Shown here piece by piece: positions 5,997-53,368 of a stretch of 64,000 bases of DNA (position 1 is the stretch's first letter; every line of letters begins with the position of its first letter). Source of the stretch: Carpediemonas membranifera BICM (taxonomy: Eukaryota > Protista > Fornicata). The DNA is taken from the NCBI GenBank assembly GCA_019828565.1, contig JAHDYR010000064.1, forward strand, positions 372,001 through 436,000. The letters are read 5' to 3'. The notes beneath the pieces are model-generated. The model made no database searches and was not told the origin of the DNA. It saw nothing but the letters and a program-made list of their open reading frames with translations. The position numbers were made by a program, and so were the translations under genes.

Positions 5997-6696
5997 TGGG
6001 TATGTATTTCAGTTCTCGTCACTTTACACTGCCTCATTCAGCAGATTTCGACAGAAGAGGCGCAAGGAGTCACTTCAGCGTTAACCAACGCAAACGACAC
6101 GCTTGATACCGTCAATGAGCTTGTATTCGAGCTGGTGACGAACTTTAGACCTGATGATTACCTGCAGATGCTTGAAGACATGACCGAAGAGCTGCTCGAA
6201 CAAGAATAACGTCACAATGAGGGCAGTTGCAGGTAAATATCGCTAAGAAGCAGTCCAAACTATGCCATGCACGGTGATTTCAACCCCCTTCCCCCCTCAC
6301 CGCAGCATGGACAGTGATAGTGACTTCCATGTCGCCCACGCCGCGTACAGCCGCCCGGCATCGCCCACACACCAGGACACGCCGCCGCCCCGAGGTTGCT
6401 GGCCGACAATGGCTGCTGTGCCGTCTGTCGTCAGCTTCTGGGTGGTATATCATATGCGCAGGCTATTCCCAGTAATTATTACATGATAGCACCAATTCCT
6501 CATGCGCCCACCATTGGATGGTTTTCGATCCGAAAACACGGCCGCTGTTCCGGAATAAAGACCTGAATTGCGAGAGATGGGTTCATCTTGGGGCTTTGAC
6601 CGTATGAGACGCTTGACCCGGGTCCAAGTCAGTTTTCGATCTTCACGCGATCAAGATCGAGTTCGACGAGCAGTCACTCAACGACGAAAGCACCAA

Positions 6697-8295: not shown

Positions 8296-8323
8296 ATGGT
8301 AAAGATTATGATAGTGCTCTGCA

Positions 8324-11321: not shown

Positions 11322-11681
11322 CAGCGTGGGGTGGTTAAAGCAAGTTTCGTTATGCATGAGTTAAGCTTTCCGCGGGTCAAGAGAGAGCGTTTATGGTTGA
11401 TGCTTTCATTTTGATTTGTCAGATTAGGTCCTTACAGGAAGCTCATCGACCACATGAGAGAGATGACCGGGAACCGCCGTAAGACCTGGTCTCCCACAGC
11501 CCCGAACCAGCGCATCGCCATCATCAGGGGCAACTACGAAGTTTATCGTCGTTTCGCCAGCATTAGTGGCAGCTCCGCCCCCGGCCTGTAGACTGGCCGG
11601 CGTTGGACAGACTTGGACCGGTGTGGACCGGTACATTGAGAGGTATGTATACGTGTAAATCGATTAGGTCGTTCATTGCGT

Positions 11682-16047: not shown

Positions 16048-16254
16048 TATGCAGTATGGCGGGCGATTGGACGGGACATCGATGTGATGAGGGACCCTAC
16101 CCCGGTAACGCCGGTTCAACAATGCCTCTTGCTATTCCACTCCTGGCATGCAGGTCGGTTGGTGACGCGGATAGAACTGACCGGTGAGCGCGGTACATAA
16201 CCAGGTATGTATACGTTTAAAGCGACAAGAACAGAACGAATTCGAGAATTTAAC

Positions 16255-31611: not shown

Positions 31612-31768
31612 TGAGCGGGCGCCTCAACCAGAAGCGCTTCATGGCCGAGTTCACCCGCGACTAACCGGAATCATAAAGCATTCTTAAAGTGCGATTGTGG
31701 GAGGAAGGGGAGGCCGTTCAAGCCCGAGCAAAGTAGCGCCTTTATGAACATGAAACCGACCTCAGCCT
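31612..31768 (+). repeat. 157-bp inverted duplicate of 33326-33482 (3' end of the methyltransferase gene plus its downstream region)
   Basis: Reverse-complement match read by eye, one mismatch seen. Confidence 0.9.
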
Positions 31769-33037: not shown

Positions 33038-33429
33038 TGTTTGCGATCAGATGTCCAGTTGTCTGGATGGGATCGCGGCCTTGACCCGGGGTCGTATCTA
33101 TTTCGAGCCACCCCCGGCATGGTGTGTGGGCGATGGCAGCAGGTCGGGTGGGCTGAGGGGAGTTGTTAGAGCATTGCAGTGCCCGCAGTTAAGTTGCTCC
33201 AGGCGGTGATCGTGACACTGTAACCGGACAGACCTTCATCCGGCGTTGATGACGGCCTCAGCCCACCACGCGTCCTCAGAGAAACTTCATTGACTCAAGA
33301 ACTTCGCCTGGCACGCCCCCGCACGAGGCTGAGGTCGGTTTCATGTTCATAACGGCGCTACTTTGCTCGGGCTTGAACGGCCTCCCCTTCCTCCCACAAT
33401 CGCACTTTAAGAATGCTTTATGATTCCGG

Positions 33430-34140
33430 TTAGTCGCGGGTGAACTCGGCCATGAAGCGCTTCTGGTTGAGGCGCCCGCTCATGCCCTTCTTGACGAGCT
33501 TCAGGCCGGACTTCTCGAAGACGGCGACCTCCTCAGCAAAGCGGACAGCGTCGACGTGGTGCTGGGGCTCCGTGAGGACGAGGGTGCCCTTGGGCTTAAG
33601 GCAGCTGATGAGCTGATCGGCGAAGTGCTGCTTCTCGGCCGCAGGGACCTCGTGGAACATCAGGAAAACGGGAATGAAATCCACGATGCCCTCAAGGTCC
33701 TCGACGCCGAGTGAGGTGGCCGTGCAGACGCGCGTCTCGACGGTGAGCTTCTTCTCTTTCATCCTGGCCTCCAGGCCCTTGATCATCTCGGGCTGGATGT
33801 CCACAGCGATATAGCGGCTCGCCTTACGGGCGAAGTACTGGGTAAAGAAGCCCTGGGCGGGGCCGATTTCGAGGACGACGCCGTTGTTCTTGGGAATGTA
33901 CTTCATGAATTGGCGCGGTGGCTCCAGGAAGCGGCGACCGGGATGGAGGAGATGATTGGCCATATGTGATGGCATGACGCTTCCCTCCTTGCCCGGAACG
34001 TGGCCGTGGTGGTGGTGATGATGATGATCATGCTCCTCTGCGGCCTTCTTGCAGTTGTCGCAATCGTGCTTGCAGTCCTTGCATTCGTGAGTCTTTTCAG
34101 CCTTCTTTTCATCCTTGGACCTCCAGAACGGCATAGTCAT
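33430..34140 (-). CDS. Class I SAM-dependent methyltransferase with a Cys/His-rich N-terminus
   Basis: VLEIGPAQGFFT, AVDIQPEMI, MFHEV, LKPKG; CKDCKHDCDNC and an HDHHHHHHH tract. Confidence 0.85.
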   Translation of the reverse strand: MTMPFWRSKDEKKAEKTHECKDCKHDCDNCKKAAEEHDHHHHHHHGHVPGKEGSVMPSHMANHLLHPGRRFLEPPRQFMKYIPKNNGVVLEIGPAQGFFTQYFARKASRYIAVDIQPEMIKGLEARMKEKKLTVETRVCTATSLGVEDLEGIVDFIPVFLMFHEVPAAEKQHFADQLISCLKPKGTLVLTEPQHHVDAVRFAEEVAVFEKSGLKLVKKGMSGRLNQKRFMAEFTRD

Positions 34141-37519: not shown

Positions 37520-38146
37520 AGGTCATGTTTGATAAAGAAGCGCGCTGTATCTGCGGTTATCCTGACCCAAGGTCGGCACTCTGCACTGACATCACGAGGC
37601 TAGCATTCCAGTGATTCATACTCGTGCCCGGTGTCACGAGCTCCTGTCCGGGTCGAATTTAGTGGCACTGCAAAAGATCGACCCAGGTGCTAGCGGGTCG
37701 ACAAGCATGTGTTCACCGACACCCTGGCGCAAGCAACATCAACTTCGTCTTCAATCGCAGTCTGGCGAGAGTTACATCCAATGTTTGCTGACCCGCAGAA
37801 GCGTTGTATTACGAAGCTGGCTCAGTGAAGTGAGCAGAGAAGCCTCAACATAAATCCAACTGATGAAGTTTCGTCGCGCAGAGTTGCAATGGTCGGTCGA
37901 TGACCTGGGATGACCTGCAAGTGGCGTCATTCATGAGGCATCTAGGGAGAACTAGTGTGCTGGGTTCACAAGGTCACCCCAACTCACACCGACCATGGGT
38001 GTTTCAGGCGACTTACGCGAGCAGGATAGATACAGGGCAGTATAACGAAGTATTAAGCACTTGACTTAGCGTTGTTTACGGGGGGCTCATGCAATTTGCT
38101 AAGCCGTCAGTTTGTGCCGCGCAGGATTAGAATTGTTAAGAACCTT

Positions 38147-38897
38147 GTTGCGCAGTGTAAACACATTGTTCGAACCTCCAGACAGGGCCTGAAAGGAACG
38201 ATCAAAGTGCCAAACTGCACAACATCATCCGTCAGCAGACGAATGTTGGCGGTTAGCCAATTGATGATGCTGGAATGATGTTGGAAGGCGCGGGATCGAT
38301 GTGCGACTGAACGGAGAGCCACTGAGCTCATCTTCCGTGGCAAGAGAACGCCACAGGATGTTCTCTGCAGCACTCTTGTCCCGATGATCAACATTCAGAG
38401 CATCAGGAACTGTTGCGCGCCACTGAGCACCACGGCACTGTGGATTTTCGCAGAGCATCACACGATGTGGGTGAACGTGCTGGTCATCACGCGGACGAAC
38501 TCGCTTGTAGGGGGCGTGGTAGTGAGGGCAGACGACGGTGGTGCGGTCCTCGTTAACCATGTTAAGATCGACGACAATGTTATACCTCTTGAGAAGGGGA
38601 ACTATCTCTCTCGCGAACTTTCGATATGACGCGCAAGGAATGAACATACCAGCAGGCTTGGTGAATCCCGAGCTCCCGTAGAAGACTTTCAGGCGAATGG
38701 GGGTGGCGATGGGATGGTGATGAGACGACGTGTGAGCGATTGTGAAGTTTGCAGCTGTGCTGACGTCCACGAAGAAGACGCTTTGTGGAAGCCCTGGAGA
38801 AGACGATCTCCCTACCGACTTAAGACGTGAGTAGGAGGGAGACAGGGCAGTGTTGCGCAGTGTAAACACATTGTTTGACCCTTCAATAGCACAAACC
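38147..38897. mobile_element. Element A: non-autonomous element carrying a Fanzor fragment, with ~34-bp terminal direct repeats and a 10-bp flanking duplication
   Basis: Direct repeats 38147-38180 and 38852-38885 (31/34 identical); TAAGAACCTT at 38137-38146 and 38898-38907; 38770-38875 matches the reverse complement of 52016-52121 at 104/106. Confidence 0.8.
38225..38769 (-). pseudogene. C-terminal half of a Fanzor/TnpB-like RuvC nuclease (RuvC-II, zinc finger, RuvC-III)
   Basis: VFYGSSGF, MVNEDRTTVVCPHY (RuvC-II Glu; CxxC degenerated to CxxY), CENPQC, HRDKSAAENIL (RuvC-III RDxNAAxNI pattern); RuvC-I and N-terminus missing. Confidence 0.8.
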
Positions 38898-38926
38898 TAA
38901 GAACCTTAAACTGCACATGCTGAGAA

Positions 38927-39774
38927 ATGTCCGAGCCTAAAACAGAGCCCCAAGAGCAGAGTGTGTCGCTTGACATTGGTAAGGATCTTTTAGATACCCC
39001 TATGATGATCGTGAATGTACCAAAGAAGCTCTCAGACTATTGGATGGCGATAGCAAAGGAGTCATCGGCAGAGCACCCCGATGGAGGCCAGCCGATCCAT
39101 ATTGGCAACATGTATGTCCATTCTATCCAAAATAATTACTAAGTACCGGTGTCAACACAGCCAATATGAACATCCCGACCGAGATGGCCGTCAAGGTCAA
39201 GGGAAAGGCTCACAAGTGTCTCGTGCAGCCGCCTCGGATGAAGACCAAGCCCTCCATGGTCGGGCATTTTGTCAAGAACAAGCGCGTGTCCTTCGTTGCG
39301 CCTGTACACGAGCGTGCGACCCTCCGCTTTGTCAGCGGCATGCCCGAGATTCCTGCAACCTCCAGTGCCCCGACGACCGGCTTCCTCACCGCAGAGGAGA
39401 CCGCGGAGCTCGAGCGGCGTCGCAAGGCTTTCGAGTTGCCCGAGTACGGCGGCCCCGTGGCGGCTCCCGAGGGTGGGTACGCCCCCCGCCGGGCCCAGCC
39501 TGCGCCCACGAAGGCAGCTGTGCGGAGAGTTCGGTCAGCAGAGGCGGAGTTCACGAGTCGCTTCCACCGGGCCTTTACGGAGAAGGAGGAGTGGAGCCAG
39601 GACGATCTCGACGAGTACCTGGCGTCGATCAACGACGGCACGTACGAGACCCTCGACCACCTCAGGACGAAGCTACGGGAGTTGTGTCTATTCGCGGCAG
39701 AGACCAAGACGTGGAGCCTCAAGCCGGAGTACCGGATTGCTCGGCGGGAAGTCGGCGTCAAGGGCGAGCAGTGA
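38927..39774 (+). CDS. GTF2F2: Transcription factor IIF beta subunit (RAP30/Tfg2); intron 39112-39143
   Basis: MIVNVPKKLSDYW N-terminus; winged helix ending KTWSLKPEYR; 32-nt intron joins the two ORFs in frame. Confidence 0.8.
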
Positions 39775-40015
39775 ACGCTAGGGTTGTAAACGACACCGCA
39801 TCAATGGGATCATAGGAGTGCGGGAGCAATTCAAGGGATGCGAGACATATCATCCTGACGAGCATGGTAGTGATCATGGCCTTTGATTGCTTGGTCGACC
39901 CATGTTTTGGGGCGGAAATGGCAGAAATCAAATACATCTTGCACATGCACAGTTACATGTGTAGCCAGTCGATGCGGAGTCAGACGGCCACTGGTGTTAT
40001 GGCCACATAAATGGC

Positions 40016-41548
40016 ATGCAGCACTCCGAGATGGGCGAAGAACTTCCACCGCTGCTTAAGCAGACCGCAGAGAAGGTGGCTGAAGGAGATTATATGTACA
40101 AAATAGGATACCTTCGCGGAAAAGTCGCCAACAGGCCCGAATTCGCCTTTATGAACGAAACGGACCCTTTGTACGGCCACTTCATGGCTATGGTCATGCG
40201 GATCCGCAATCCAGTTGAAGAAGCGAAGGAGGAGCCCGTTGTCGAGGCTACTGCCAAGGCGGTGCGCTCATTAGAGTGGGTCACGCCGCACCCGGTCATG
40301 ACGAAGAGACAGCGCATGAGACTCCACTACACCGCACAGAACGTCGCGGTGAACGGCCAGTCGTTTTTGGACTTCTTGTGCTCTCGTCACGACCCAGATC
40401 ACGCCTTCCTCCAGCCGACAGACACGCTTAACCCGCACTTCGTCGCGCTGGTGAGGCAATACGCTAAGCTGCTGGGCACCACACCATTCACAGACACGCT
40501 AGGGCTCTCAGAGACGGCAGAGCAGACCGTATCAGCCCAGCGCTGCGTCTTCCTCGAGAAATGCCAGGCGCGGGCCGACGCCGACTCGATCGTTCGCGCG
40601 AGAGACGCCGCTGCTCGGGAGTACCAGGCCCGTAAGGCGGACATGGAGGTCGACTGGGCCGACATCGTGGTGGTAGACACGCTTGCCTTCCCCCCCGAGG
40701 AGATCCCCGCGCTGCCCCTCGCCATGGACACGCCTGCCGTCAGGGACGTCGGGGTCCTCCCCACTCTCAGAGGCGACATCGACATGAAGAGCAGAGAGGA
40801 GGCTGCCGCTGCTGAGCAGGCCCAGACCCGGGCTGAGGCTGAGAAGAACCAGCGGCTGCGGGCCCGGCTCCCCGCTGGGATGTCGGGCGCCGTGGTGCGC
40901 GGAGCGATGGGCAGCACGGCCCGGGCATCCACTGCAACTATTGAGTGCCCCGTGTGCGGGCGGATGGTCCGGGCGGACGGCTTCTCGGACCATATCAGAC
41001 ACGAGGTCGCAAACCACACCAGAGACGCCGAGCTGAAGAAAATGCTCGGCGAGAAGAGGTTTGCTCAGGCACAGCAGGGCCAAATCGACGTCAATGCGGT
41101 CGTAGCAGACATCCTGGCAGCCCGCCCCGAGCTGGGCAGCGGTGTGGCCCCGGCCCCTGTTGCCGTCGTCCGGCCGGCCTTGGGGGTGAGCCTGGCCGAC
41201 TCGCAGCTGGAGTCGAAGCGGGCTCCGGATGACATACCGGCGCCGGGTTCCGGCACTGTGGTTGAGGTGACGTTCCTCGAAAAGGACGTCCCGCCTGCAG
41301 TTTTAGGAGAGCCCGCGTGGGACCGCATCAAGGGTTCGACCCAGGCGCTCAAGTTTACTGGCCCTGTCACCGTTGGTAGCGTCATTGGGCGCGTTGCCGC
41401 GGAATTTAACATCCCCGAGAACGTCCTGAAGAACCGCTTCCGCAACAAGGCCGACGACAAGTTCCTCAAGGGCGAGGACGAGGAGCTGAGCAACGGGATG
41501 CGGCTCGAGTTGGTGTTCAAGGCACCAAGGCGCCGTGGAAAGCGGTGA
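40016..41548 (+). CDS. SF3A1: Splicing factor SF3A1/Prp21
   Basis: Two SURP domains (TAEKVA..FAFM, TAQNVAVNG..FL), VDWADIVVVDTL, CPVCG..HIRHE, UBL-like C-terminus. Confidence 0.8.
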   Translation: MQHSEMGEELPPLLKQTAEKVAEGDYMYKIGYLRGKVANRPEFAFMNETDPLYGHFMAMVMRIRNPVEEAKEEPVVEATAKAVRSLEWVTPHPVMTKRQRMRLHYTAQNVAVNGQSFLDFLCSRHDPDHAFLQPTDTLNPHFVALVRQYAKLLGTTPFTDTLGLSETAEQTVSAQRCVFLEKCQARADADSIVRARDAAAREYQARKADMEVDWADIVVVDTLAFPPEEIPALPLAMDTPAVRDVGVLPTLRGDIDMKSREEAAAAEQAQTRAEAEKNQRLRARLPAGMSGAVVRGAMGSTARASTATIECPVCGRMVRADGFSDHIRHEVANHTRDAELKKMLGEKRFAQAQQGQIDVNAVVADILAARPELGSGVAPAPVAVVRPALGVSLADSQLESKRAPDDIPAPGSGTVVEVTFLEKDVPPAVLGEPAWDRIKGSTQALKFTGPVTVGSVIGRVAAEFNIPENVLKNRFRNKADDKFLKGEDEELSNGMRLELVFKAPRRRGKR

Positions 41549-41782
41549 GGGGACGGTGTCATCACAGCTGACATCGCTAAATAATGTTCACGTCACATTC
41601 TGTTGACGGTTGTAGTTATGTGTCAATATGGGCCCGAGCAAGGATCATGGAGGCAACCTCATCGTTGTGATGACGATCAAGGGCCAGATCTCAGAGATCG
41701 TCATCGGCCATCAAAACTTGGAAGTAGCTCCGAGCAGAAAAGTGGACAAGAGATCACAGAATTTGGACTCAGACAATCAAAC

Positions 41783-43162
41783 ATGAGATTCGTCGTAGTT
41801 TTTGCGTTCCTTTTGGTATCGCTTGTCCAGCTTTCATGGACACTTTCTGAATACGACGAAATCTCAAAGAGCGAGGCGGCCGATTTTGCCCAAGCACTGC
41901 GCGAATCCAACGACGGCGTGCTCCATCCGATCTTGTTTGTTCCCGGCCTTTTTGGCAGTCGCCTTGAATGGAAGCTCGACGGCAAGGACGACGAGAACCT
42001 CGCCTGCTCGCACTCGACCAAGGGCAAGTATGACCAGTTCTGGATCACGATACCCGACATGCTGCCCTTCGAGGATAGCTGCTGGATCCGTAAGAACAAG
42101 CTCGGCCTCACCGCGGAGGGGCACACCATCCCCCAGCCCGGCGTCGACGTCCGGCCCGCCCACTGGCCGCTCGTCCGGTCCGTCGAGTATCTCACGGACA
42201 CCGTGGGCTTCAAGGAGCTCGCCAAGTACGCCCACAACTTCTTCCAGCTGCTCCGCGGCATGGGATACACGGACAACGTCAACATTCTCGCCCACCCATA
42301 TGACTTCAGAGCATCGCCCATCGATTACTTCGACCCGAGCACCGGCGTCCTCGACAAGTTCGCAGGTCTCGTGGAGCACATGTACGCCACCAACGGGAAC
42401 ACGCCCGTCGTCCTGGTCGGGCACAGCATGGGCGTGCTTGTCGCGACGCTCTGCCTCGGCCACCAGACACAGGAGTGGAAGGACAAGTATATTCACCAGG
42501 CGGTATTCGCCGGCGGGCCCCTTGGCGGTGCCCCTGACCTCGTGGGCGCGGTAATCAACGCCCCCGGCGAGTTCCCGCTTGTCCCTCCGGTGTACGCCAG
42601 CGAGAGCACGTTTGTCCCCGCCCTCCAGACATGTATGTAACTTTCGATCCAATCTTACCCAGGGTGTGGCGGTATCTGGCTTGCCCCCGACAGCTCCCTC
42701 CTGACCGAGGACAACCTCCTCATCAAGCACGACGGCAAGGACTATAAGCTCAGCGACATGGATGAGTTCCTCCGTACAGCAGCCGCTGCCGAGCCAGCCG
42801 TCGCCCGCTGCTTTGAGAAGACCCGCGGCCTGTTCACTGAGCAGTGCGAGAACGACTGCGCCCCCGGTGTCGACCTGACGATCCTGTACGGCACCTCGTT
42901 CAAAACGAACGCCCAGTACGAGCTCATCAAGGGCGAGTTCGGGCAGCCCCTGAAGGACCTCAAGGCCAAGGTCACCGGCCACGTCATCGGCGACGGGACT
43001 GTCCCCATGGACTCTGCCCTGACCCTCCCCCGCCGCTGGGAGGCCTCCGGTAACAACGGGCACCCTATCAAGTTCATCGAGGTCCTTAACGTGAAGCATA
43101 ACGATCTTGTTTGCAGCTCTGCCGGCGCTAAGACCCTGTTTAAGGCAATTTTTGGCCAGTAA
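41783..43162 (+). CDS. LCAT/lysosomal phospholipase A2-like secreted acyltransferase; intron 42633-42662
   Basis: Signal peptide, VPGLFGSRL, HPYDFR, GHSMG, GDGTVP, catalytic His region; 30-nt intron removes an in-frame TAA. Confidence 0.88.
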
Positions 43163-43901
43163 AGTCTAAGCGTCTCTCCGATATTTGTGACGAAGTTCCA
43201 CATCATCAGACTGGAATTATGTCTCTCCTTGCGAGACCAGGTTCATTCTCGACTTGCAGTTTAAGACCAATCAAAATCACAAAATGATTGCGCGAAAAAA
43301 AAAGACAGTCTTCTTCGACTAGCTCGAATTCAAGTGAAGTTTCATGTTCTTTTGTGTTTGATCACACAAATACTGCCTCCGGGTAGTTTTTAGATCCAAC
43401 CGAATTTTTCAGACCGGGTACTCCTTTCCTCGACTTGTTCTTGGAAATGTCCCCTGAGGTTGCCGCAGCATTGCACCCCCCGCCGTGTGCGGCCTCGCTA
43501 TCTAACAACATCAACATATGAGCCATTTCATGCGGTCAGGCAAGCTCTGCAGCCACCCTGTGAGTTGATAGGTTCACAGGATCAATTCGAGCATGCCACG
43601 CCCTGAGCTGTGCCATGGCACCCGAGAATCAATGTTTGTTGCACAATATGACGTACTTCCCCGTTCCCTGTTTACAGTGACTCACTTTGACATGGTTCGC
43701 AGTGAAGCTTTGGCGCGAGGCAATCCTCCGGCGGACGCTTCTCAAGATGTCAAATTGAGAAATAAGAATGATTAAACTGGCTACTCACAGTCTGACTACT
43801 TCCTGAAGCTTCCTAAAGCTGTCTCGTGAACGAGTCAGTGGCCGCGCAGGATAGCCGTGCACTATAACTAAGTTCGTTCAACCACTACCATCAAGCCAAT
43901 C

Positions 43902-44168
43902 ATGATTGGAAGCAAGCCCAAAGGACCAGGATATAGAAAGGGAGTTATTCACGTTGACACAGCGACGCTCATTGCAAATGGGGCCGAGTACCATGATTCC
44001 AGCGCTCCTATGCCGGAGCCGGTACAACTGAGTGAACCAAACCCTTCTACGCCAGTAGGACGGCATCCTCCGTCGAAGATGAAGCACATCCCCAGAAGCG
44101 AGCTTCTCCAGATGCCCGGCGTGTCGGAACACGACATGCACGGCGAGGATGCCCAACAACCGAAGTAA
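43902..44168 (+). CDS. Possible small hypothetical protein
   Basis: 88-aa ATG ORF followed by a TAAA-type signal; no recognised motif. Confidence 0.35.
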   Translation: MIGSKPKGPGYRKGVIHVDTATLIANGAEYHDSSAPMPEPVQLSEPNPSTPVGRHPPSKMKHIPRSELLQMPGVSEHDMHGEDAQQPK

Positions 44169-44396
44169 ACTAAACGCTCACACCGTGACGTGTGACGACG
44201 AGGCTGATGGATGTGCCTGCCATATCTTGTACTCTCCTTTCACCCTTTCATTGTCAGGTCACGTTTATACACGGCACCTCGGCACCGGCGACGAATACTG
44301 GCAAGAGTACCCTCGTACACATCAAGCAAGCCTCTCTGAGACACCGGCCAGCTGTTGACGATTGTTGACCAGGGTGCATGTGCCGCCTGACAGCCG

Positions 44397-45230
44397 ATGA
44401 GCGAAAACGTCAACATGTCTAACCGTGGCCTGGACCACGTTAAAAACATCATATCCATCGTCTCTGGTAAGGGAGGTGTTGGTAAGAGCAGTATAACAAC
44501 GAACCTGGCGGTCAGTCTTGCACAGCGCGGGTTGAAGGTCGGAATCGCGGATGTTGACATCAACGGCCCTAGTGTTGCGGCCATGATGTCCATCCCGTCG
44601 GATCAGGCTGCTGCCGGCGTCGAGGTGGAGGATGGGCTTCTCCTTTCCCCGTTCACGTCCCCGCACAGCGGCGTCGCGGTGGCCAGCATGGGCTCGTTTG
44701 TTCAGCCCGGCACACCGCTCATGTGGCGCGGGCCGATGCTAGGATCGGCCACTAAGCAGCTGCTGACCCAGGTGGCGTGGGACGACCTGGACTACCTCTT
44801 GCTGGACTCCCCGCCTGGCACCAGCGACATCATGATGGTCGTTAATGACTCCGCCCAGCTCAACGGCGGCATTGTCGTGACTACACCGCAGCGCGTGGCG
44901 TGGGACGATGCGTCCCGGTCCATTGAGATGCTGCGGCAGCTTAAGGTCCCTGTGCTCGGCGTCGTCGACAACATGGCCTCCTTCGAGTGCCCCAAGTGCG
45001 GCCACAATGAGGACATCTTCGGCGACTCCTCCCTCATCGAGCAGGCGGCCTCTGAGGAAGACTTCGACATCCTCGCCAAGATCCCCCTCATACGCCAGAT
45101 CAGGGACGCCGGTGATGCCGGGAAGCCCGTTGTGCTATCTGACAAGCGCATGCAGGAGCTCTTCGGGGAGCTGGCTGAGCGCGTGATCGAAAGAACAAAC
45201 CTGGGCCTGCTCGGTGTTCTCCGCGACTGA
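44397..45230 (+). CDS. Mrp/NBP35-family P-loop Fe-S scaffold lacking the N-terminal cluster domain
   Basis: SGKGGVGKS, DVDINGPS, WRGPM, DSPPGTSD, VTTPQ, CPKC. Confidence 0.9.
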   Translation: MSENVNMSNRGLDHVKNIISIVSGKGGVGKSSITTNLAVSLAQRGLKVGIADVDINGPSVAAMMSIPSDQAAAGVEVEDGLLLSPFTSPHSGVAVASMGSFVQPGTPLMWRGPMLGSATKQLLTQVAWDDLDYLLLDSPPGTSDIMMVVNDSAQLNGGIVVTTPQRVAWDDASRSIEMLRQLKVPVLGVVDNMASFECPKCGHNEDIFGDSSLIEQAASEEDFDILAKIPLIRQIRDAGDAGKPVVLSDKRMQELFGELAERVIERTNLGLLGVLRD

Positions 45231-45516
45231 GGTCAGCGATAGGAATAAAAGAGAGCTCTCGGCGTGCTCCGATCGTTGAGCACTGTCGCGACCAACTGTG
45301 GCCCGGCAGATCAGATGATTTTTGACGCTTTCATTTCCACCGCCTGCGTCGTCTGTGCACTCAATGACACAACCGGGGCTCTTTGTACACAACGAATCCT
45401 CTTCCAAACTTAATTTATCATCGTCGTCGATGATTGAGCGCGATTCCTCCTCCAAACTGAACAGGACATCGTCATCCATACTGATTGAGCGAGAATTTGT
45501 TACAAACGAGGCTATC

Positions 45517-46788
45517 ATGGACCAATCCAGCGCCCTGGAAAGGTTCCGGGCTCTCTTTACTGAGGGACATGAGGAGCCGGCCTATATGCGTCCGTACCTG
45601 TACATGCACTTCCTCGGATTCCTCTCGGACCAGCCGTCCTACTGGAAGGACGAGATCGAGCCCCACAGGGCACTCTGGGGCGACATACTCTCTCAGCATG
45701 AGGCCAACCTCCGTATAAGCCGCCGCCACGGGGCAGACCCGTCCCACGTCGTTCCGACCGATACAAAGTACCAGCTCGAGGCCGTTGAAGCCTCCATGGA
45801 GCTCGTGCAGAAGGACCTGCTCCGTCTATTCGCCGGCGATGAGTACTTCAAGACGGCCAAGTTCACGGGCGACGTGACCCAGATCCTGACGATGCACAGT
45901 GTGTACGGCGCGTACCACATTGACGAGCACAACCAGGACTGGGCGTACAGGCAGGGCTACCACGTCATGGCGTCTGTGGTCTACTTCCTCGTGCACCACA
46001 GCCGCTCGGTCATCCAGGAGCACGGGACGCCCCTCGCGAAAGCCCTCATCGGCGACGAGGAGAATCTGGTCAAGGACACGTTCATCATATTCAGACGGCT
46101 CGTGAGGATGCTGGACTGCTTCTACAACCACGACAGTGCGGGCTCAGCGTCTAACCTCGACGAGGAGTGCCATAACATGCTCATGGTCATCCAGTCGGAC
46201 GAGGCGCTCTTCGCAAAGATGAAGGAGCCCGCGGGCTACGAGCCATCCATCTTCCTGAACAAGTGGTTCCGCCTGATGTTTGCGTACCAGATGTCGATAC
46301 CGAGCACCGTACTGCTGTGGGACTACATCCTCGCCAGCAGTATCACTAACATGGCCGAACCCCTCATCATGGTCCGATTTATAGCTGCTGCCCTCCTCCG
46401 GAAACACCGTACGACCATCCTGGAGGCCGAGGACGGCGAGCTCATCGAGTTCCTCAGCAGGTCGCCTGCACTCAGCGACGCAGAGGCGTTCGGCCTCATG
46501 AACGACGCCGAGCACCTCTCCCGTCGGTACACGCTGCCCCAGCTGCCCGTGGCCGACTCCCCAGCCATGACGCCGAAGAAGAAGCGCGGGTCGACCAACT
46601 CTGCGCTGCCGTCCAAGTGCTCAAACTGTGGCCAACTGGACGGGGCAACCGTCAGGGCGGACGACCTGATGTCTCAGGCGCTGCCGCTGCTGTACGAGGT
46701 CATGGAGGACGGTGACCGCCGGGCCGAGCTCATCATCGGTCTGCTGTGCCAAGCCCGGGACGCCCTCGACAACGCCGGGATACACTGA
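45517..46788 (+). CDS. TBC-domain Rab GTPase-activating protein
   Basis: VQKDLLR (arginine finger), YRQGYH (glutamine finger), KWFRLMF, LLWD. Confidence 0.85.
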   Translation: MDQSSALERFRALFTEGHEEPAYMRPYLYMHFLGFLSDQPSYWKDEIEPHRALWGDILSQHEANLRISRRHGADPSHVVPTDTKYQLEAVEASMELVQKDLLRLFAGDEYFKTAKFTGDVTQILTMHSVYGAYHIDEHNQDWAYRQGYHVMASVVYFLVHHSRSVIQEHGTPLAKALIGDEENLVKDTFIIFRRLVRMLDCFYNHDSAGSASNLDEECHNMLMVIQSDEALFAKMKEPAGYEPSIFLNKWFRLMFAYQMSIPSTVLLWDYILASSITNMAEPLIMVRFIAAALLRKHRTTILEAEDGELIEFLSRSPALSDAEAFGLMNDAEHLSRRYTLPQLPVADSPAMTPKKKRGSTNSALPSKCSNCGQLDGATVRADDLMSQALPLLYEVMEDGDRRAELIIGLLCQARDALDNAGIH

Positions 46789-46929
46789 GCACCGGGCATT
46801 GTTTCATAAAGTCGTCGCCTGGGGTGAGTCGAAGCGTTGAGTGCCTTGCCGTGTTGCTGGGGTTTGGACTTTTCTGGGATCGATCATTTTGATTAGAATT
46901 TCGCACTTTTGTCTGCGATTTCTGACGAA

Positions 46930-48036
46930 ATGTCAACGTTCCTGACGGAGGGCATGCAATCAGATTCCGATTCCACACACGAACAAACCTATGGGAACTC
47001 GATTGGTGGCGAGCAGAGCGCCATTCATGCAATGCAGCAGGAGGAGCAGACGTTTGATGGGATTTGGGACCGTTTCCACGATGATTTCAAGGACTACATG
47101 AACTCATTGAAAAATCAGGCTGAAACTCATCTCAGTGAACGCTATAACGAGCGTCTGGCCAACAAGGACAAGGAGATTGACCAGTGCAAGGGCCTGATCG
47201 GCCAGCTGGACCAAAAGTGCTCCATGCTCGTCGACCAGCTCCGGAAAATGTACGAGTCGAGGGCTGCTGCTGCCTCGTTTGCTGCCACTGTTCGTGAACG
47301 CGAGAGACAGCGCGCGGCGTGCATTTCTGCTCTCCGTGGATGGCGCCAGTGGGCTCGCGCTTCTGCACACCAGCGGCATGCCGTTCGCATTGTTCGCGAT
47401 GCTGTATCCGTCCGCGTCAAGCGCGAGGCATACTGCCATTGGCTTGGCGAGGCCTTCTCGGCCTACAGGGCTCGGGTCCGCTCAGAGCGGGAGGCGACGG
47501 TCATCACCATTCGCCAGACAATCGAGGCCGAGCTCCACGACGACATGAACGCCATCAAGGCAGAGGCGGCCCGGCTGAAACAGGAGAACGCTATGCTCCT
47601 CCAGGCCCAGCAGGATCTGCAATCTGGCGTCCGCCAGGCCTTCCTCAGGGGCGCTTCGACACTCCGCATGGAAGCCCTCAACGCCTTTGGGGCAGACCTG
47701 ACCGCGACGGATGATAACATGGGCTTCCTGGACATCAGCCAGCCGGTGCCCCGCGCCCCCGTTGAGCCCGAGGGCGAGGACGACGCCCCCTCGGCGCCCG
47801 TTGTGGAGGAAGCGCAGGTCGCACCGTCTGCGCCATTTGTCTCTGTGCCCGCTGAGGCGGCGAGGACGAGGCCACACACCGCACAGCCACGCCGGGCCGT
47901 GGACGAGACGAGGCGGACGAAGCCCGTTGTTGCCCGGATGCCGGGTACTGTTAGGCGGGGCGGGTCCTGCAGTGCTGGGACAGCCGTCAACACTGCCGAG
48001 ATGAAGGCGCGCGTGAAGGTGACGCGCGGAGACTAG
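46930..48036 (+). CDS. POC5: Centriolar protein POC5-like
   Basis: Trp-containing Sfi1-like repeats and AFLRGASTLRMEA resembling the POC5 box. Confidence 0.65.
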   Translation: MSTFLTEGMQSDSDSTHEQTYGNSIGGEQSAIHAMQQEEQTFDGIWDRFHDDFKDYMNSLKNQAETHLSERYNERLANKDKEIDQCKGLIGQLDQKCSMLVDQLRKMYESRAAAASFAATVRERERQRAACISALRGWRQWARASAHQRHAVRIVRDAVSVRVKREAYCHWLGEAFSAYRARVRSEREATVITIRQTIEAELHDDMNAIKAEAARLKQENAMLLQAQQDLQSGVRQAFLRGASTLRMEALNAFGADLTATDDNMGFLDISQPVPRAPVEPEGEDDAPSAPVVEEAQVAPSAPFVSVPAEAARTRPHTAQPRRAVDETRRTKPVVARMPGTVRRGGSCSAGTAVNTAEMKARVKVTRGD

Positions 48037-48181
48037 CTGTTAAATATATCCTTGCTCTGGTGAGATGCGCGACTAGTGAGTTTAGTGTGAGGGGTGACTA
48101 TATTTGTCTGCTCCCGGATTGCGAGGTCCTCGAGTGGAGTGCTAAACTGCGAACGCTGGAATTCTCAGTATCTCTGCAACG

Positions 48182-48944
48182 ATGGAACTAGATGCACCAG
48201 TGGAGGTCGCTGCTGCTGCGACTACCGGAACTACCGCTGCTGCAACTGAAGCTGTTGCCGTGACGGGCTCAGCGATGGATGGCGTGAAGAAGGTATTCAA
48301 ATTCTTGCTAGCGCTCGTTAGGAAGACTGAACACCCGTTTGTCATTGTGTTCCACATAATATTCAAGCTTATTGCCCTTCTTGTGTACGTTCTCGTTGAT
48401 ATTTTCGAGACTTTTGTGCCCTTCAGCTCAAAACTGTTTGTAGCCGCCTTATCCACTCTCATCCAGCGTTTCAGAGTCAAACACCTTCATTTTCACATTC
48501 ATAGCTGTTGTTATCTTCTGTGCTACCGACTTCTGGGTCGTCAAGAACGTCTCTGGCCGCATCCTCGTCGGGATGCGCTGGTGGTCCACTCTCGACGCCA
48601 AGGGCAACCAGATCTGGCGTTTCGAGTCCTTCCGTGCGTATGGTGTGGACAAGTCGATGAACGTCTTCGAGGTCGCGCTGTTCTGGTCCGTGATGCTGGT
48701 GACCCCCATGGCGTGGGCCGTCCTCTTCGTGCTCTCCCTCATCAGGCTCAAGCTCATCTGTGTCCTCTGCCTGGTCGCCATCGTGCTCGGCGTCGCCAAT
48801 CTTATCGGCTATGTCCGCTGCCAGAAGGACGCAAGAGGCGTAGTCACCAGCTTTGTTAAGAGAACTGGCCGTGCTGCCGGCGCACAGGCCGCCCGCAAGT
48901 ACATCGAGCACCAGTTCCGCGAACTGAACGAGGACGAGGTGTGA
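48182..48944 (+). CDS. TVP23: Golgi membrane protein TVP23; intron 48436-48466
   Basis: HP..FHIIFK; after splicing DFWVVKNVSGRILVGMRWW, WRFES, ANLIGY. Confidence 0.9.
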
Positions 48945-49183
48945 TGTAAATAAAATAACCCTGCGACGGGAAAGGCAGGTTGAGCGTGATCACAATAATC
49001 TCGTAAGGATCTGAGTGAGACTCAGTCACGATGGAATTGACGCATCTCTTAGTTAAGCTGCCGCCGACCGGTGTTCAGTCGGTCTCTGCACCCGTCCTGA
49101 CCTTCCATCCTGACTCACACGTGACTCTGACTGCCGTTGACGGCGGTGCAGCCTAAGAACAAACATCTTTTGCATCGCTCGCC

Positions 49184-50134
49184 ATGGCAGGATTAGACGA
49201 CATCTTGTTTGGCGCCCGCTTATGGGTAACGATCATCTTTGGCTCACTTAATGTCGTCTTCCTGATTGCTCTTCTTATTGCCATGCGACGCGCAAAGTCC
49301 TCCCTGTTCAGGAACCGCTATTACGATAGATTGACTTTCCTGCTATCTCTAGATCCCTTTATGACCGTGTGCTACGTCGCCATGGCTCTTCTGAACTTCT
49401 TTGACACGATTGTGTGGCCCGAACACTGGTTCTTCACCAGCAACATGAGTCCAATTACCAAATACCCGTATATGGTCATTCACGACATCGCATCGGGCTT
49501 CACATACGCCCAGTACCTCTACCTGTTCTTCATCGCGCTCTCTCTGGTCCAGACTGTGACCCGGTCCCCCGAGGACGTCACGCCCCCGCCACTCAAGCTC
49601 GCCTACCCCTGGTGGCAGCACCTCATCGTCATCTTAGCCACGCCAGTCGTCATTTTGACCAAGTTCGTGGACCATACGCAGGTGGAGGTGGGCGACGTCA
49701 CGCTGTTCCACCACTGGTTCGGGCCCGGACTCCTCGTCCGAACCCTGTACGCCCTGGCCATCATCGCCGCCATCACCATCTGCTACTTTTACAGCCTCGT
49801 CAAGATGCTCAAGAACCGCGGCAACGGGGGGTCCGACGACTACGTCAAGCACATCCGCCGCACGTTCTCCCTCTTCACCATCCTGTTCGCTGTGGAGATC
49901 ATCATCATGCTCTCCTCCCTGGCTGTACTGACGCCCATGCTCATAGTGGGCCACGCCGTCGTCCACTCGCACCTGTGGAACACGGGTTTCGCCCTCGTCG
50001 ACATCGGCTACACATTCCTGGTCTGTTGGCGCGGTGTGTTCGTTGCGTTGCTCCACATTGCCCGGACTGCCCCCATCAAGCGGTGGATCCGAGACAAACT
50101 GCACAAGAGCGATGAGGATTACGCTTATTTCTGA
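49184..50134 (+). CDS. Putative seven-transmembrane (GPCR-like) protein
   Basis: About 7 hydrophobic helices over 316 aa with a basic loop between TM5 and TM6. Confidence 0.55.
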   Translation: MAGLDDILFGARLWVTIIFGSLNVVFLIALLIAMRRAKSSLFRNRYYDRLTFLLSLDPFMTVCYVAMALLNFFDTIVWPEHWFFTSNMSPITKYPYMVIHDIASGFTYAQYLYLFFIALSLVQTVTRSPEDVTPPPLKLAYPWWQHLIVILATPVVILTKFVDHTQVEVGDVTLFHHWFGPGLLVRTLYALAIIAAITICYFYSLVKMLKNRGNGGSDDYVKHIRRTFSLFTILFAVEIIIMLSSLAVLTPMLIVGHAVVHSHLWNTGFALVDIGYTFLVCWRGVFVALLHIARTAPIKRWIRDKLHKSDEDYAYF

Positions 50135-50416
50135 GGCCGATAAAGATTAACCGTTACCTCTCTGGCATGTTGGGTCAGGCATGGAACAGGGTACTAGGGC
50201 ATCAGTGCCCTCTATGGGGGGGGGTTAGACGACTGTTCTCTGAGTTTGGTCCTGCTGATTTTATGAAGAATCTTGAGAAGACGATTTTACTACCGACCTA
50301 AGATGAGAGGAGGAGGCAGACATGGCGGTATAGCGTTGTATTAAGCGCTTGGTTGTCCCTTCCGTCCACAAAAGGCTGTGCCTTATCCTGCCAAAAATCG
50401 CAACAACTCTCTGAAC

Positions 50417-51899
50417 ATGGCTGGTTTGTCTCGATGCGCTCCATAGATCTCACTTAGTCGACGAAACATTGTTTGGATATACGGTAAAGCGGGAAGCCGC
50501 TGACGCAACCACTGCCGTTGTGTCCCTGGATGATTATCGCCGCATGCGTGGTGTTGCAACCTCCATACAATCAGCCTCGAAGAACGATGCCCTTGAGCGC
50601 CGCCAAAAGTCGAAGGAGAAGGCTGCCAAGTGGAACAACACGATTTCTGGCCTTCAGAAACAGCGGCTTGCCGACCGCCAGCGCCGCATCGAGGAGGAAG
50701 AGGAGCGCAAGCGCGAACTCGACCGCGAGATGGAGCTTCTTGCTATGAAGGAGCACGCCGAGACTATCCAGCGTGCTCGGGACGTCATCAACGACCAGGA
50801 TGACCGCATCCAGGCCTTCAAACGGGCCTCGGACGTCTCCAAGTGCCTCGACACCGTCGGAATCCAGCTCGCAGAAAAGCAGGCCCGTGCCAAGGCCGAG
50901 AAGGAGGAGGACCAGCGCTGGGCAACCCATCTTAAGGCCCAGGAAGAGGCTGAGAAGGCTGACGATGCCCGTAAGGCCGAGGAGAGGTGCAAGGCCGCGC
51001 TAGAGCTGAAGAAGACCCGCATCGAGCAGCTCGAGGAGAAGCGCCGTGGCCTGGACGAGGAGGCCGCCCAGGACCGCATGGAGGGCGAGATAATTGCCGC
51101 CGAGGCCCGCCAGGACGAAGAGGCCGAGATCGAGCGGGTCGCCGAACAGAGACGGCGCGCCCTGGTCGTCAACAAGGAGAACACGCAGGTCTGGGAGGAC
51201 CAGGCCCGCCGCAAGCAGGCCGACCGTGCGGCCGACGCTGAGTCGCTCGTGATGGCGGATGAGCTGACTGTCTGGGGAGACCACATCGAGGCCGCCAAGA
51301 AGAAGTCCGAGCAGCGCTACGTTGACGCTGCCGTTGCCCGGCGTGAGCAGACATACGGAAAGCTCGCCCGGCACCTCCAGGAACAGACGACGTCGTTCGA
51401 ACGGAAGCTTGAGGTCGAGGAGCGCGAGGCCGAGGAGAAGTTCGTCAACGAGGAGGCCGCCAAGAAGGCACGGCAGCTTGAGATGCAGCAGATGTGCGAC
51501 CGGCAGCGGCGGCTGCAGATGAAGCGGGCCGAGGAGGTCGCCGCCCGGGAACGCAGGATAGCCGAGAGCATGAAGCAGAACCTCGACAAGAACATCGCCG
51601 AGCTGAGGGCCGCGGAGAAGCAGGAGCTGATGGACAAGTACCGTCAGGCCAAGGAGCTTTCGATCCACCAGCGGAAGGAGGCCGTCCGCCAGAGGGCCGC
51701 CAAGAAAAATGCCCGGGCCCAGGAGGTCCAGCGATACGAGGCTATGGCCCAGGCCGTCGCTGCGGACGAGAAGGAGTTCATCGAGCGGTACGAGAGCGAC
51801 CTGCTGGCCCGGCGGGACAAGGGAGAGAACGTCGACCCGCTCGCACTGGCACTCGGGAAAATGAAGGTCAAGAGCCAGAAGCTCGAGAGCACGATGTAA
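50417..51899 (+). CDS. Trichoplein/TPH-domain ciliary protein, CFAP210 (CCDC173)-like; intron 50424-50457
   Basis: SKEKAAKWNNTI motif, long E/R/K coiled coil; 34-nt intron supplies an ATG in frame. Confidence 0.7.
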
Positions 51900-52002
51900 A
51901 TACTCACTACAGCGGCGTGGGGGTCGGTGCTGGCCAACTGTAGCGTGCAACTGTGTCTCAATCGATGCATTGAGCTGGCAGTTTAAAGCAAGACAACTTG
52001 TG

Positions 52003-53307
52003 AAGGGTCGAACCGAACAATGTGTTTATACTGCGCAGCACTGCCCTGTCTCCCTCCTACTCACGTCTTAAGTCGGTAGGGAGATCGTCTTCTCCAGGGC
52101 TTCCACAAAGCGTCTTCTTCGAAAATAATGCCGAGGCTCCGCCCGCGCCGGATCCTGATTACCCGAGTGGCGGCAGGTCCGGGCGGCCCATGAGCCAGCC
52201 ACCTTGGCGGCCGATGACGATTAGCTGGGCCATCCTAACCACGATCGCGGTGGCCTCGACGCAGTTGCCGTCGACTGTGAGTCTCGCAGTTGTCGCGCCA
52301 ATTACTAGCAGCGGCTTGCTGTCAACCGTAAACAGCTCTGGGGGGACAGGGATGCTTGTGATCTTGAGCCGCGCCCGGTTGGCCTCGGCCTCCGATAGCA
52401 GCAACGAACAGTCTGCCCCCGAGTCCGGGTCAATCATACGCTCTACCGACGACAGGGTGACCCGTGTGGGGTCAACCCAACTCACAGGGCTTGGCTGATT
52501 GGGACTGGGCGTGGGGTTGGTCGGGGCCGATGACAAGTATCTAGAGGGTTTATAAGACCCTCCGCCATGGTTGCGGTACTTCTTCTGCTGACCCCCCATC
52601 AGCTTGGCCTCCGCCCGTGCCAGCTTCTCCTTGATTGCCGCGATCTGCCGCTTGGCCTGGGCGAGTTCCCTTTCGGCCTTCTCGGCCCTGATGACCCTAG
52701 CAGGCTTCTTCGGGGCCCACATGGTGGGGCTCGCGAGGGCGACGTCGCCGCGCAGTTTGGCGACAGTCGAATCGAAGTCGACGCGCTAAGGATGGCGGCT
52801 TCTGCCGGAAGAACGTCCAAGATGGACAGGAGATGGCTGAGGAGGTGGTTGGCAGTATCCCCCTCCACAAACTCAGCGAGTTCCTCAAATGGGCGCACGA
52901 TCTTCTCGAACTGCGCCGCGGACGGCTGCCCTTCGCCGTGGTGGCGCTTGAGGGCATAGATTGCCCGGAGTTGCTTGTCCGTTGTACCGTAGAGGTACTT
53001 GGTCATGGCTTTGGTCAGCGAATTGAACTCCTTTGCCACCGCTGTGCGGTGCGCTTCGTTCACGGCAGCGTCTGGTTCGGCCTTGCCCAGCGTCTCAATC
53101 CCCTCGTCAACCCATGCCTTCAGCTCACTGTGAGCCAGCATGAGCTGGATCACGTCGCGGTCGATCAGGGACACGGCGTGGACGGCACTTTCGGCGGTTT
53201 TGACGTACAAGGCGCCGTCCCTCGTAAACTTCTTAACCTCGGCGAGGCTGAGACCCTTCAAGGAGGGTGTTTCGCTCATGTTTAGAAGAATGTTTATACT
53301 GCACAAC
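52003..53307 (-). mobile_element. Element B: gag-like plus aspartic protease element sharing ends with element A
   Basis: ACAACTTGTG at 51993-52002 and 53308-53317; TGTTTATACTGC repeat at both ends; 106-bp end shared with element A. Confidence 0.8.
52159..53279 (-). CDS. Gag-like/retropepsin polyprotein, split by a one-base frame break near 52787
   Basis: ATG at 53279; frame change at CTTAGCGC; C-terminal MIDPDSGADCSLL and LIVIGRQ retroviral-type aspartic protease motifs. The gag call is positional inference; no CCHC knuckle seen. Confidence 0.65.
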
Positions 53308-53368
53308 ACAACTTGTGCTATTGAAGCAAATATGACACTGGACGATTTTGGGGACCCAGACAGGTTCA

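Follow-up and report, generated by a model that had tools for sequence, protein, structure and literature searches.

Two elements in the window

We analysed a stretch of 64,000 nucleotides from the fornicate protist Carpediemonas membranifera BICM (assembly GCA_019828565.1, contig JAHDYR010000064.1, positions 372,001 to 436,000 of the forward strand), which is called the window below, and in it two mobile elements, A and B, that have the same ends and carry different genes. Element A (38146-38893, + strand) holds the C-terminal part of a gene for a Fanzor/TnpB-like nuclease, and element B (51999-53308, minus strand) holds a gag-like gene followed by a gene with a retropepsin domain. The DNA between them (38.9-52 kb) is taken up by host genes of an ordinary kind (PRP21-like, LCAT-like, NUBP/ParA, RabGAP and TPH-domain genes among them), so A and B represent two separate insertions. 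Both elements are read here in the direction of their purine tract. Their features, and those of two older remnants, are as follows.

Element A
38141..38145, + strand: left target duplication, AACCT (5-bp duplications are family-wide)
38146..38184, + strand: 5' terminal repeat, its first 25 nt identical to the 3' repeat and the remainder diverged
38208..38224, + strand: inverted copy, inside A, of the start of the repeat; on the sense strand it also reads as a host-like AAACTGCA motif, directly after the stop codon of the Fanzor-like gene
38225..38719, - strand: Fanzor/TnpB-like C-terminal remnant, aa 511-674 of 674
38719..38720, no strand: deletion junction, from comparison with the L048 element
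38770..38828, + strand: shared pre-tract block
38829..38850, + strand: purine-rich tract, candidate polypurine tract abutting the 3' repeat
38851..38893, + strand: 3' terminal repeat, 43 nt, TG...CA
38894..38898, + strand: right target duplication, AACCT (5-bp duplications are family-wide)
38908..38914, + strand: host motif AAACTGC, 14 nt past the last base of A and just upstream of an ATG at 38927

Element B
53314..53326, - strand: end of an older diverged terminal repeat outside B
53309..53313, - strand: left target duplication, AGTTG (both flanks read)
53291..53308, - strand: 5' terminal repeat, only 18 nt common to the 3' repeat (same 18-nt junction in the relative on contig C51)
52599..53281, - strand: gag-like ORF1, without Pfam match
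52162..52722, - strand: ORF2, with a coiled-coil/basic stretch and a retropepsin domain (DSGA at 52414-52425, GRPDL near the C-terminus)
52124..52164, - strand: 41-nt scrap of a Fanzor-like gene (nt 904-943 of the L048 element)
52041..52121, - strand: shared block and purine-rich tract
51999..52040, - strand: 3' terminal repeat of 42 nt, differing from the family by small indels
51994..51998, - strand: right target duplication, AGTTG
51977..51984, - strand: host motif AAACTGCC, 14 nt past the last base of B

Older remnants
38015..38090, + strand: diverged tract-plus-repeat remnant just upstream of A
50272..50370, + strand: old 3'-end remnant that belongs to a sister family and matches the shared block and repeat at 75% identity, ending 14 nt before ATCCTGC, upstream of an ATG at 50418

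Common ends and size of the family

Within the window, 38770-38875 and 52016-52121 form an inverted match of 106 nt at 98% identity, in agreement with the 104 of 106 identical positions counted in a first-pass annotation of this DNA. That annotation also described both elements as opening with a 16-nt repeat and closing with the common block, the purine tract and a second copy of the repeat, and we found the same layout, with the opening repeat at 38147 (+) in A and at 53307 (-) in B. The tract (38829-38850 and 52041-52062) adjoins the 3' repeat in both elements and is not built of purines alone, although these make up 20 of its 22 bases. The terminal direct repeats have TG...CA ends and are exact over 25 nt in A-type copies and over 18 nt in B. 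The cis ends of A and B are one set, made up of a left repeat of 18-25 nt and a right module that comprises about 60 nt of shared block, the tract and a 43-nt repeat.

These ends were sought in the whole C. membranifera genome (24.2 Mb, 69 contigs; L-numbers denote fetched genomic loci and C-numbers genome contigs), a check already proposed in the first-pass annotation, and they turned out to be numerous. A 116-nt query from the right end of A returned 157 candidates, with 40 scored copies at 98-100% identity. The 45-nt pattern taken from the shared block occurs 102 times, in copies that all conserve the tract, against no occurrence of its reversed-pattern control, a recurrence far beyond chance. 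The 43-nt right repeat (up to 3 mismatches) is found 119 times, again with a control count of 0, and fourteen such repeats have no tract ahead of them, while about 20 follow a different tract. In 30 fetched copies the right terminus is uniform (...ATAGCACA), and the 15 copies bounded within 1.5 kb start with TGTTGCG on the left and end with GCACA on the right. The copies form a deletion series, with a repeat-to-repeat spacing of 485 to about 2,235 bp, in which both ends are always retained.

A scan of the whole window for pairs of long terminal repeats (LTRs) picked up only A and one pair of host promoter-like repeats, and a scan of the fetched DNA for a purine run plus TGT gave no matches, its rule being too strict. 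On contig C39, two repeats (236934 and 239254) lie 2.3 kb apart and may belong to tandem or adjacent copies.

Element A and the 2.2-kb Fanzor-like element

The longest form of the family measures 2.2 kb and has a single long open reading frame (ORF), located on the strand opposite to the tract. In one copy (L048:887-3114) the frame is uninterrupted over 674 aa. Element A consists of nt 1-574 and 2054-2227 of the L048 element; the loss of nt 575-2053 (1,479 bp, in frame) fuses residues 511-674 to the first 17 codons. The remnant keeps the RuvC-II glutamate, the zinc (Zn) ribbon and the RuvC-III motif HRDKSAAENI, and has no RuvC-I. The earlier view of A as the holder of an antisense RuvC half of a Fanzor thus stands, with A as an in-frame deletion derivative. 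Nor is this piece a one-off capture, an outcome that had been considered at the time, since Fanzor-like sequence is present in nearly every copy with these ends and one copy has the ORF uninterrupted. In that copy (L048:966-2990, - strand) the 674-aa frame has no ATG at the position where its paralogues start, and no stop codon closes it further upstream, across the shared block and as far as the right repeat.

We detected at least 293 genomic candidates of the Fanzor-like ORF, which fall into subfamilies with about 50-58% identity between them. Substitutions confined to a single copy are even over the three codon positions (41/36/28) and those found in two or more copies favour the third (26/22/40), a weak hint that the coding frame may have mattered while the family diversified. 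As for transcripts, a Trinity transcript-derived protein of EukProt P0056 is 98% identical to part of the Fanzor-like ORF, and probable RNA contigs, which give neither strand nor ends, span the host flank, the right repeat and the start of the Fanzor-like gene, one of them with a poly(A) tail. In Fanzor-sense RNA at the left end of A, the inverted copy at 38208-38224 is predicted to pair with the left repeat in a stable hairpin (fold z -4.13, against -2.67 for the other strand).

In the sense frame, the pre-tract block of A can be read as a C-terminal peptide (...EKTISLPT) followed by a stop codon. Its counterpart in the remnant at 50272 is LEKTILLPT-stop, with synonymous changes in the DNA, and the peptide is possibly the end of an ancestral pol. 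Among the deletion and chimeric derivatives of the family, many have short microhomologies at their junctions. Two of the chimeras (L036:8555-9903 and L033:6484-9894) join the C-terminal half of another Fanzor-like subfamily, 96% identical to the 642-aa ORF of L049, to the last 250-330 nt of an A-type element.

Proposed assignment of the ORF to Fanzor/TnpB

In an alignment of three paralogous subfamilies, the split RuvC order D...E...D is conserved (GFDPGARS; EFRTS, or NEDRTT in the subfamily of A; HRDKSAxENI), as is a Zn ribbon of the form CPxC ... CxNPxC between RuvC-II and RuvC-III. Only the E and the last D of the triad are retained in A. In a language-model feature search, which provides a lead and not a test, the C-terminal 245 aa came closest to PF07282 (Cas12f1-like TNB) clusters of Mucoromycota (0.97) and giant viruses (0.96).

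Profile and homology searches gave no significant support. The best Pfam value for PF07282 was E 0.12, in 3 of 7 paralogues, and in a PDB profile search Cas12f was best at E 0.46, over the Zn-ribbon stretch, neither of them significant. A phmmer search of PDB yielded nothing significant for the Fanzor-like pieces, and NCBIfam no match for the paralogues. Homologues outside C. membranifera were found neither in an exhaustive search of 1.8 billion representatives nor in a word-indexed profile search. An AlphaFold2 model of the C-terminal 345 aa, built with 20 paralogues, reached a mean predicted local distance difference test score (pLDDT) of 36.7. On the motif evidence we accept the 674-aa ORF as Fanzor/TnpB-like and very divergent; its membership is not proven.

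Element B and its chimeric structure

Pfam gave no usable match for the ORFs of A and B. The description of B as a gag-like gene plus retropepsin nevertheless holds, as the DSGA and GRPDL motifs of ORF2 line up with the proteases in two resident gypsy pols, both of them verified by Pfam. The nearest Atlas clusters of ORF2 are all retropepsin families, at 0.93-0.94. ORF1 is gag-like by position, and it distantly resembles (29% identity, E 5e-7) the DNA immediately ahead of a chromovirus pol (C1:1797703-1798023). That pol (L045) encodes CCHC, protease, reverse transcriptase (RT), RNase H, integrase and chromodomain. A BLASTP comparison of the gag of B with the ORF called upstream of the L045 pol found no match, the match from the genome search lying in another frame. 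Only three sequences, on C27, C51 and C21, are partly related to the interior of B, and none of them runs into an RT. At L044 (5492-7018, - strand), a 508-aa ORF without Pfam match has a coiled coil and a VDPDSGA protease start like that of ORF2 (E 1e-10), and may belong to another gag-protease-type unit.

The interiors of A and B had been called unrelated, which is correct for the genes that they carry and fails for one short segment of B. Between the stop codon of the protease and the shared block, 52124-52164 matches the Fanzor-like element at 95% (E 1.7e-13) and encodes, antisense, the ...APPAPDPD stretch just before RuvC-I. The last ~150 nt of B therefore stem from a deleted Fanzor-like element. 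B is a recombinant with such an element, and its first 1.15 kb derive from an older gag-protease lineage. That lineage natively has the same 18-nt left repeat, as seen in the C51 relative, and a single AGTTG duplication spans the chimera. A probable RNA-run contig (53116-53240, antisense to gag) has a run of 25 A's at its end, past 53240 on the + strand; as it has the variants of the C51 paralogue, the transcript would come from the neighbour of that copy and not from B.

Target duplications and insertion sites

Flanking duplications of 10 bp had been ascribed to each element. We found duplications of 5 bp instead, AACCT for A (38141-38145 and 38894-38898) and AGTTG, read on the minus strand, for B (53309-53313 and 51994-51998). 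The AACCT of A sits inside a local AAGAACCT repeat, hence the apparent 10-bp duplication. In turn, the extra CACA to the left of B is the last 4 nt of the older diverged repeat remnant at 53314-53326, and this remnant accounts for the recurrence of a 14-mer from inside the end of A outside the other end of B. With an older repeat tip directly outside the left duplication of B, the same target position was hit twice. Most of the 15 bounded copies are likewise flanked by 5-bp duplications (e.g., GGAGC, TAATC and GTGCC), with oddities at L004 and L018, and the duplication of the L048 copy is GACCC.

The insertion sites are fixed to the base. In 28 of 30 copies a motif of the form [AT][ATC][ACT][CG]TGC starts exactly 14 nt after the last base of the element, always in one orientation, and the same rule is obeyed by A, B and the remnant at 50272. 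In half of the flanks an ORF of at least 100 aa opens within about 100 nt. The host motif reads AAACTGC(A/G), with the variants ATCCTGC, AACCTGC and AAAGTGC, and often follows GCCTT or GGCA (38908-38914; 51977-51984 on the minus strand; 50385-50391; in L001-L030 from about 1639). A start codon frequently lies 3-60 nt past it. The start codons that follow argue for a promoter role, and the motif is probably a core promoter or initiator element of this protist.

An antisense look-alike of the host motif, TTATACTGCG, is present in the terminal repeats (38146-38170 and 38851-38875, antisense) and also in an LTR of the resident gypsy element g2, described below (L035:700-760). With this look-alike, the right repeat could be the promoter of the antisense Fanzor-like gene, and the left repeat could fire outward. 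The left flank of A (38110-38145) holds GTGCCGCGCAGGATTAGAAT, which resembles the repeat start of L049-type Fanzor-like elements. Promoter-proximal sites of this kind seem to accumulate remnants of several families.

Reverse transcriptases and nested gypsy elements

A link between these ends and an RT had been named as a test in the first-pass annotation; among the copies and RT candidates examined we found none with an RT or integrase of its own, and the RTs at L035 and L047 belong to nested gypsy elements. We scored 150 of 1,519 RT candidates and compared their positions by eye with 100 listed ends; among these 150, only one on contig C58 was in range, with the RT 4.2 kb from a shared end. 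This RT (L047) was rejected as part of a shared-end element, as it lies in a gypsy element of ~6 kb with ~115-bp LTRs nested inside a Fanzor-like copy. At L035, an 857-aa ORF runs from the N-terminus of the Fanzor-like protein into RT-RNase H. We rejected it as a gag-pol-Fanzor element, too: its gypsy homology starts at aa 423, and the gypsy part is a 5'-truncated insert with a tract of its own and an ~82-bp LTR. A second, complete gypsy element in L035 (g2, with 61-bp LTRs and a 4-5-bp duplication) is nested 40 nt away.

Three Ty3/gypsy families are therefore seen nested in Fanzor-like genes (L035:698-5282, L035:5320-8389 and L047, reverse 2981-9021), with LTRs of 61, ~82 and ~115 bp, respectively. 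Resident gypsy elements with Pfam-verified protease, RT, RNase H and integrase have the same miniature layout, namely TG..CA LTRs, a purine tract and 4-5-bp duplications, and their LTRs are equal within g2 and within the L047 insert. A further RT, on C48, sits 3.7 kb downstream of a tract-less repeat, which makes it, like the fourteen repeats without a tract, a candidate helper site.

Probable mobilisation in trans and the unequal repeats

On balance, A and B are probably non-autonomous elements of the LTR-retrotransposon type that have one set of cis ends, are mobilised in trans and recombine, a view that we hold with moderate confidence. A Ty3/gypsy integrase that acts on cDNA is indicated by the TG..CA ends and the tract, together with the 5-bp duplications and the common choice of target, and the deletions and chimeras joined at microhomologies fit template switching by an RT. 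RT and integrase would be supplied in trans by the resident Ty3/gypsy elements. The tail of B would most simply have been acquired when an RT switched templates between RNAs packaged together, after which the chimera would have integrated as one unit. The first-pass annotation had offered, as one of two origins, units that share cis ends and complement each other in trans. This is the better of the two. The shared ends with different cargo stand, whereas B is a recombinant rather than an independent partner and no RT/integrase helper with these ends was found.

Several observations weigh against trans-mobilised retrotransposition. Searches with the DNA, gag and protease of B yielded no RT- or integrase-bearing element with these ends, and the assembly holds no autonomous relative of that gag or protease. 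Past nt 18-25, every copy shows the same differences between its left and its right repeat. A full 43-nt right repeat ahead of the left interior of the Fanzor-like element was never met (0 cases), and the tract is joined to a left-type repeat in 1 case, against 102 with a right-type repeat. On the left, A and B share nothing past nt 18-25, and next to their left repeats we found no tRNA-type (TGG) primer-binding site. The chimerism of B could also have arisen at the DNA level. In A-type copies, a TTCGAACC-containing stretch after the left repeat might pair with an internal tRNA region.

Canonical reverse transcription regenerates two equal LTRs, so with repeats unequal in every copy the replication of these elements cannot follow the textbook two-jump scheme. 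The variant that we prefer for trans-mobilised elements would have them lack a U5 and a primer site of their own. Minus-strand strong-stop DNA would be made on the RNA of a helper and moved to the 3' R of the elements, and plus-strand transfer would proceed through R alone. Each cycle would then leave U3-R on the left and U3-R-U5 on the right, the right-hand U5 coming from the helper. Against such a helper-supplied U5, the variants at repeat positions 13 and 26 display no clear independent assortment.

The L050 subfamily of Fanzor-like elements (600-aa ORF) has a 20-nt direct repeat (1402-1421 and 3803-3822), with a strong purine tract before the right copy and a longer right end. The same unequal-end design is thus seen in an independent subfamily.

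Unequal ends inherited as they are in more than 100 copies would be the direct outcome of copying DNA ends. The elements might accordingly be moved or copied as DNA, without reverse transcription, their ends serving as sites for an integrase or another transposase and the tract being a relic; the absence of a recognised primer-binding site and of a helper with these ends agrees with this. We nonetheless judge it unlikely. The part that is conserved and exchanged across A-, B- and F49-type chimeras is the whole right module, tract plus about 60 nt upstream, and not the terminal bases alone, and the microhomology at deletion and chimera junctions is typical of RT template switching. Moreover, retroviral-type integrases require free linear DNA ends, and the resident gypsy elements have the same layout of tract, TG..CA and 5-bp duplications.

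A second alternative concerns only the tail of B, which might have been gained once B was already in place, either through ectopic recombination or gene conversion with a Fanzor-like element or because another element inserted at the hotspot and a deletion followed, and which would then say nothing about co-packaging or reverse transcription. Reuse of the target, with the older repeat end directly outside the left duplication of B, speaks for such a course, as do the possible tandem or adjacent copies on C39 and the contrast between the old interior of B (90% identical to the C27 relative) and a tail that is 99% identical to the Fanzor-like family. Yet AGTTG is found next to the left end, which is of B type, as well as next to the right end, which is of Fanzor type, as one integrating molecule would leave it, both internal junctions lie at short microhomologies, and the same module is found on other interiors at L033 and L036, which makes a later gain improbable in our view.

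The other origin offered in the first-pass annotation derives A and B, by deletion, from a single autonomous gag-pro-RT element with a Fanzor gene, which might stand in for an integrase. It draws on the common ends, on the protease and Fanzor scrap together in B and on the 857-aa ORF of L035, and is largely refuted and very improbable. Fanzor is the sole ORF of the longest, 2.2-kb elements, and with respect to the tract its strand is the opposite of that of gag and protease. The L035 ORF arose as a fusion when a foreign 5'-truncated gypsy inserted in a Fanzor-like gene, and genome searches with the gag and protease of B gave no RT-bearing relative.

A more far-reaching version of trans-mobilised retrotransposition may be put forward as speculation that is probably wrong. 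A community of micro-elements without U5 and primer site, made up of Fanzor-like carriers from several subfamilies and a gag-protease unit, would replicate only if it could borrow strong-stop DNA and integrase from helpers, and would freely swap one right module, and the Fanzor-like nuclease, with a guide RNA running from the left end into the flank, would cut the empty promoter allele and so act as a homing drive.

Relation to known systems

Non-autonomous LTR elements and promoter-targeted gypsy integration are known kinds. Like A and B, the TRIM, LARD and TR-GAG elements have terminal direct repeats, a purine tract and 5-bp duplications and encode neither RT nor integrase. As proposed here for A and B, they rely on autonomous elements in trans; in TR-GAG elements gag is the one gene left, which is comparable to B keeping gag and protease. 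In contrast to them, the repeats described here are 18-43 nt long, far below usual LTR sizes, and unequal between left and right, no tRNA-type primer site is seen, and the abundant family carries an antisense gene for a TnpB/Fanzor-like nuclease.

Position-specific integration of Ty3/gypsy-type elements is known from yeast Ty3 at RNA polymerase III (Pol III) start sites, S. pombe Tf1 at Pol II promoters, and DGLT-A and Skipper of Dictyostelium. These elements and ours share a fixed short distance from a promoter-type landmark and spots that are hit repeatedly, while the landmark here is an AAACTGC-type motif 14 nt downstream, in strict orientation. Gene capture and antisense ORFs are likewise known in LTR retroelements, as in maize Bs1, the retroviral oncogenes and the antisense ORFs of Grande and RIRE2. 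There, too, an extra gene lies between the LTRs, sometimes on the opposite strand with a promoter of its own, and recombinants arise by RT template switching. Here, unlike in Bs1, Grande and RIRE2, the captured gene is itself a mobile-element nuclease and none of the retroelement genes is left in its carrier. On the current view, Fanzor and TnpB nucleases earn their keep by putting cut-and-paste transposons back once they have excised, so a retroelement that does not excise should have no use for one.

Known carriers of Fanzor1 and Fanzor2 are DNA transposons (Helitron, Mariner, IS4-like, Sola, MuDr and IS607-type) and giant viruses (Bao and Jurka 2013, PMC3627910), and no retrotransposon is known to encode a Fanzor, according to a 2026 review (PMC13565253). 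Our literature search found no paper that links Carpediemonas with Fanzor. The ORF described here and known Fanzors have in common a location in a mobile element with the 3' end of the gene at a terminus, the RuvC D/E/D and Zn ribbon, and many copies, a large number of them decayed; it differs in being too divergent for significant Pfam or PDB profile matches.

What is new from A and B is a gag-protease element on Fanzor ends, its recombinant origin and the genome-wide count of unequal ends that are inherited as such. More than 100 young Fanzor-like copies lie between miniature LTR-type ends, and the persistent inequality of these ends is a concrete puzzle for reverse transcription. If the elements do move through RNA, the known carriers of RNA-guided nucleases would widen, the question would arise of how a nuclease benefits a copy-and-paste element, and the family would exemplify very small cis requirements together with base-precise, promoter-proximal targeting of the Ty3/gypsy type. 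Should the homing drive be real as well, no RNA-guided nuclease would have been shown before this one to spread by retrotransposition.

Other repeats in the window

A 35-nt direct repeat, 83% identical between its copies (11629-11663 and 16191-16225), lies about 50-90 nt upstream of two host ATGs that are 4.5 kb apart, and looks like a shared promoter element rather than an LTR pair. Finally, identical 50-nt contexts around the motif TTAAAGTGCG are found in inverted orientation at about 31664-31713 (+) and 33381-33430 (-), ~1.7 kb apart, as part of an inverted duplication.

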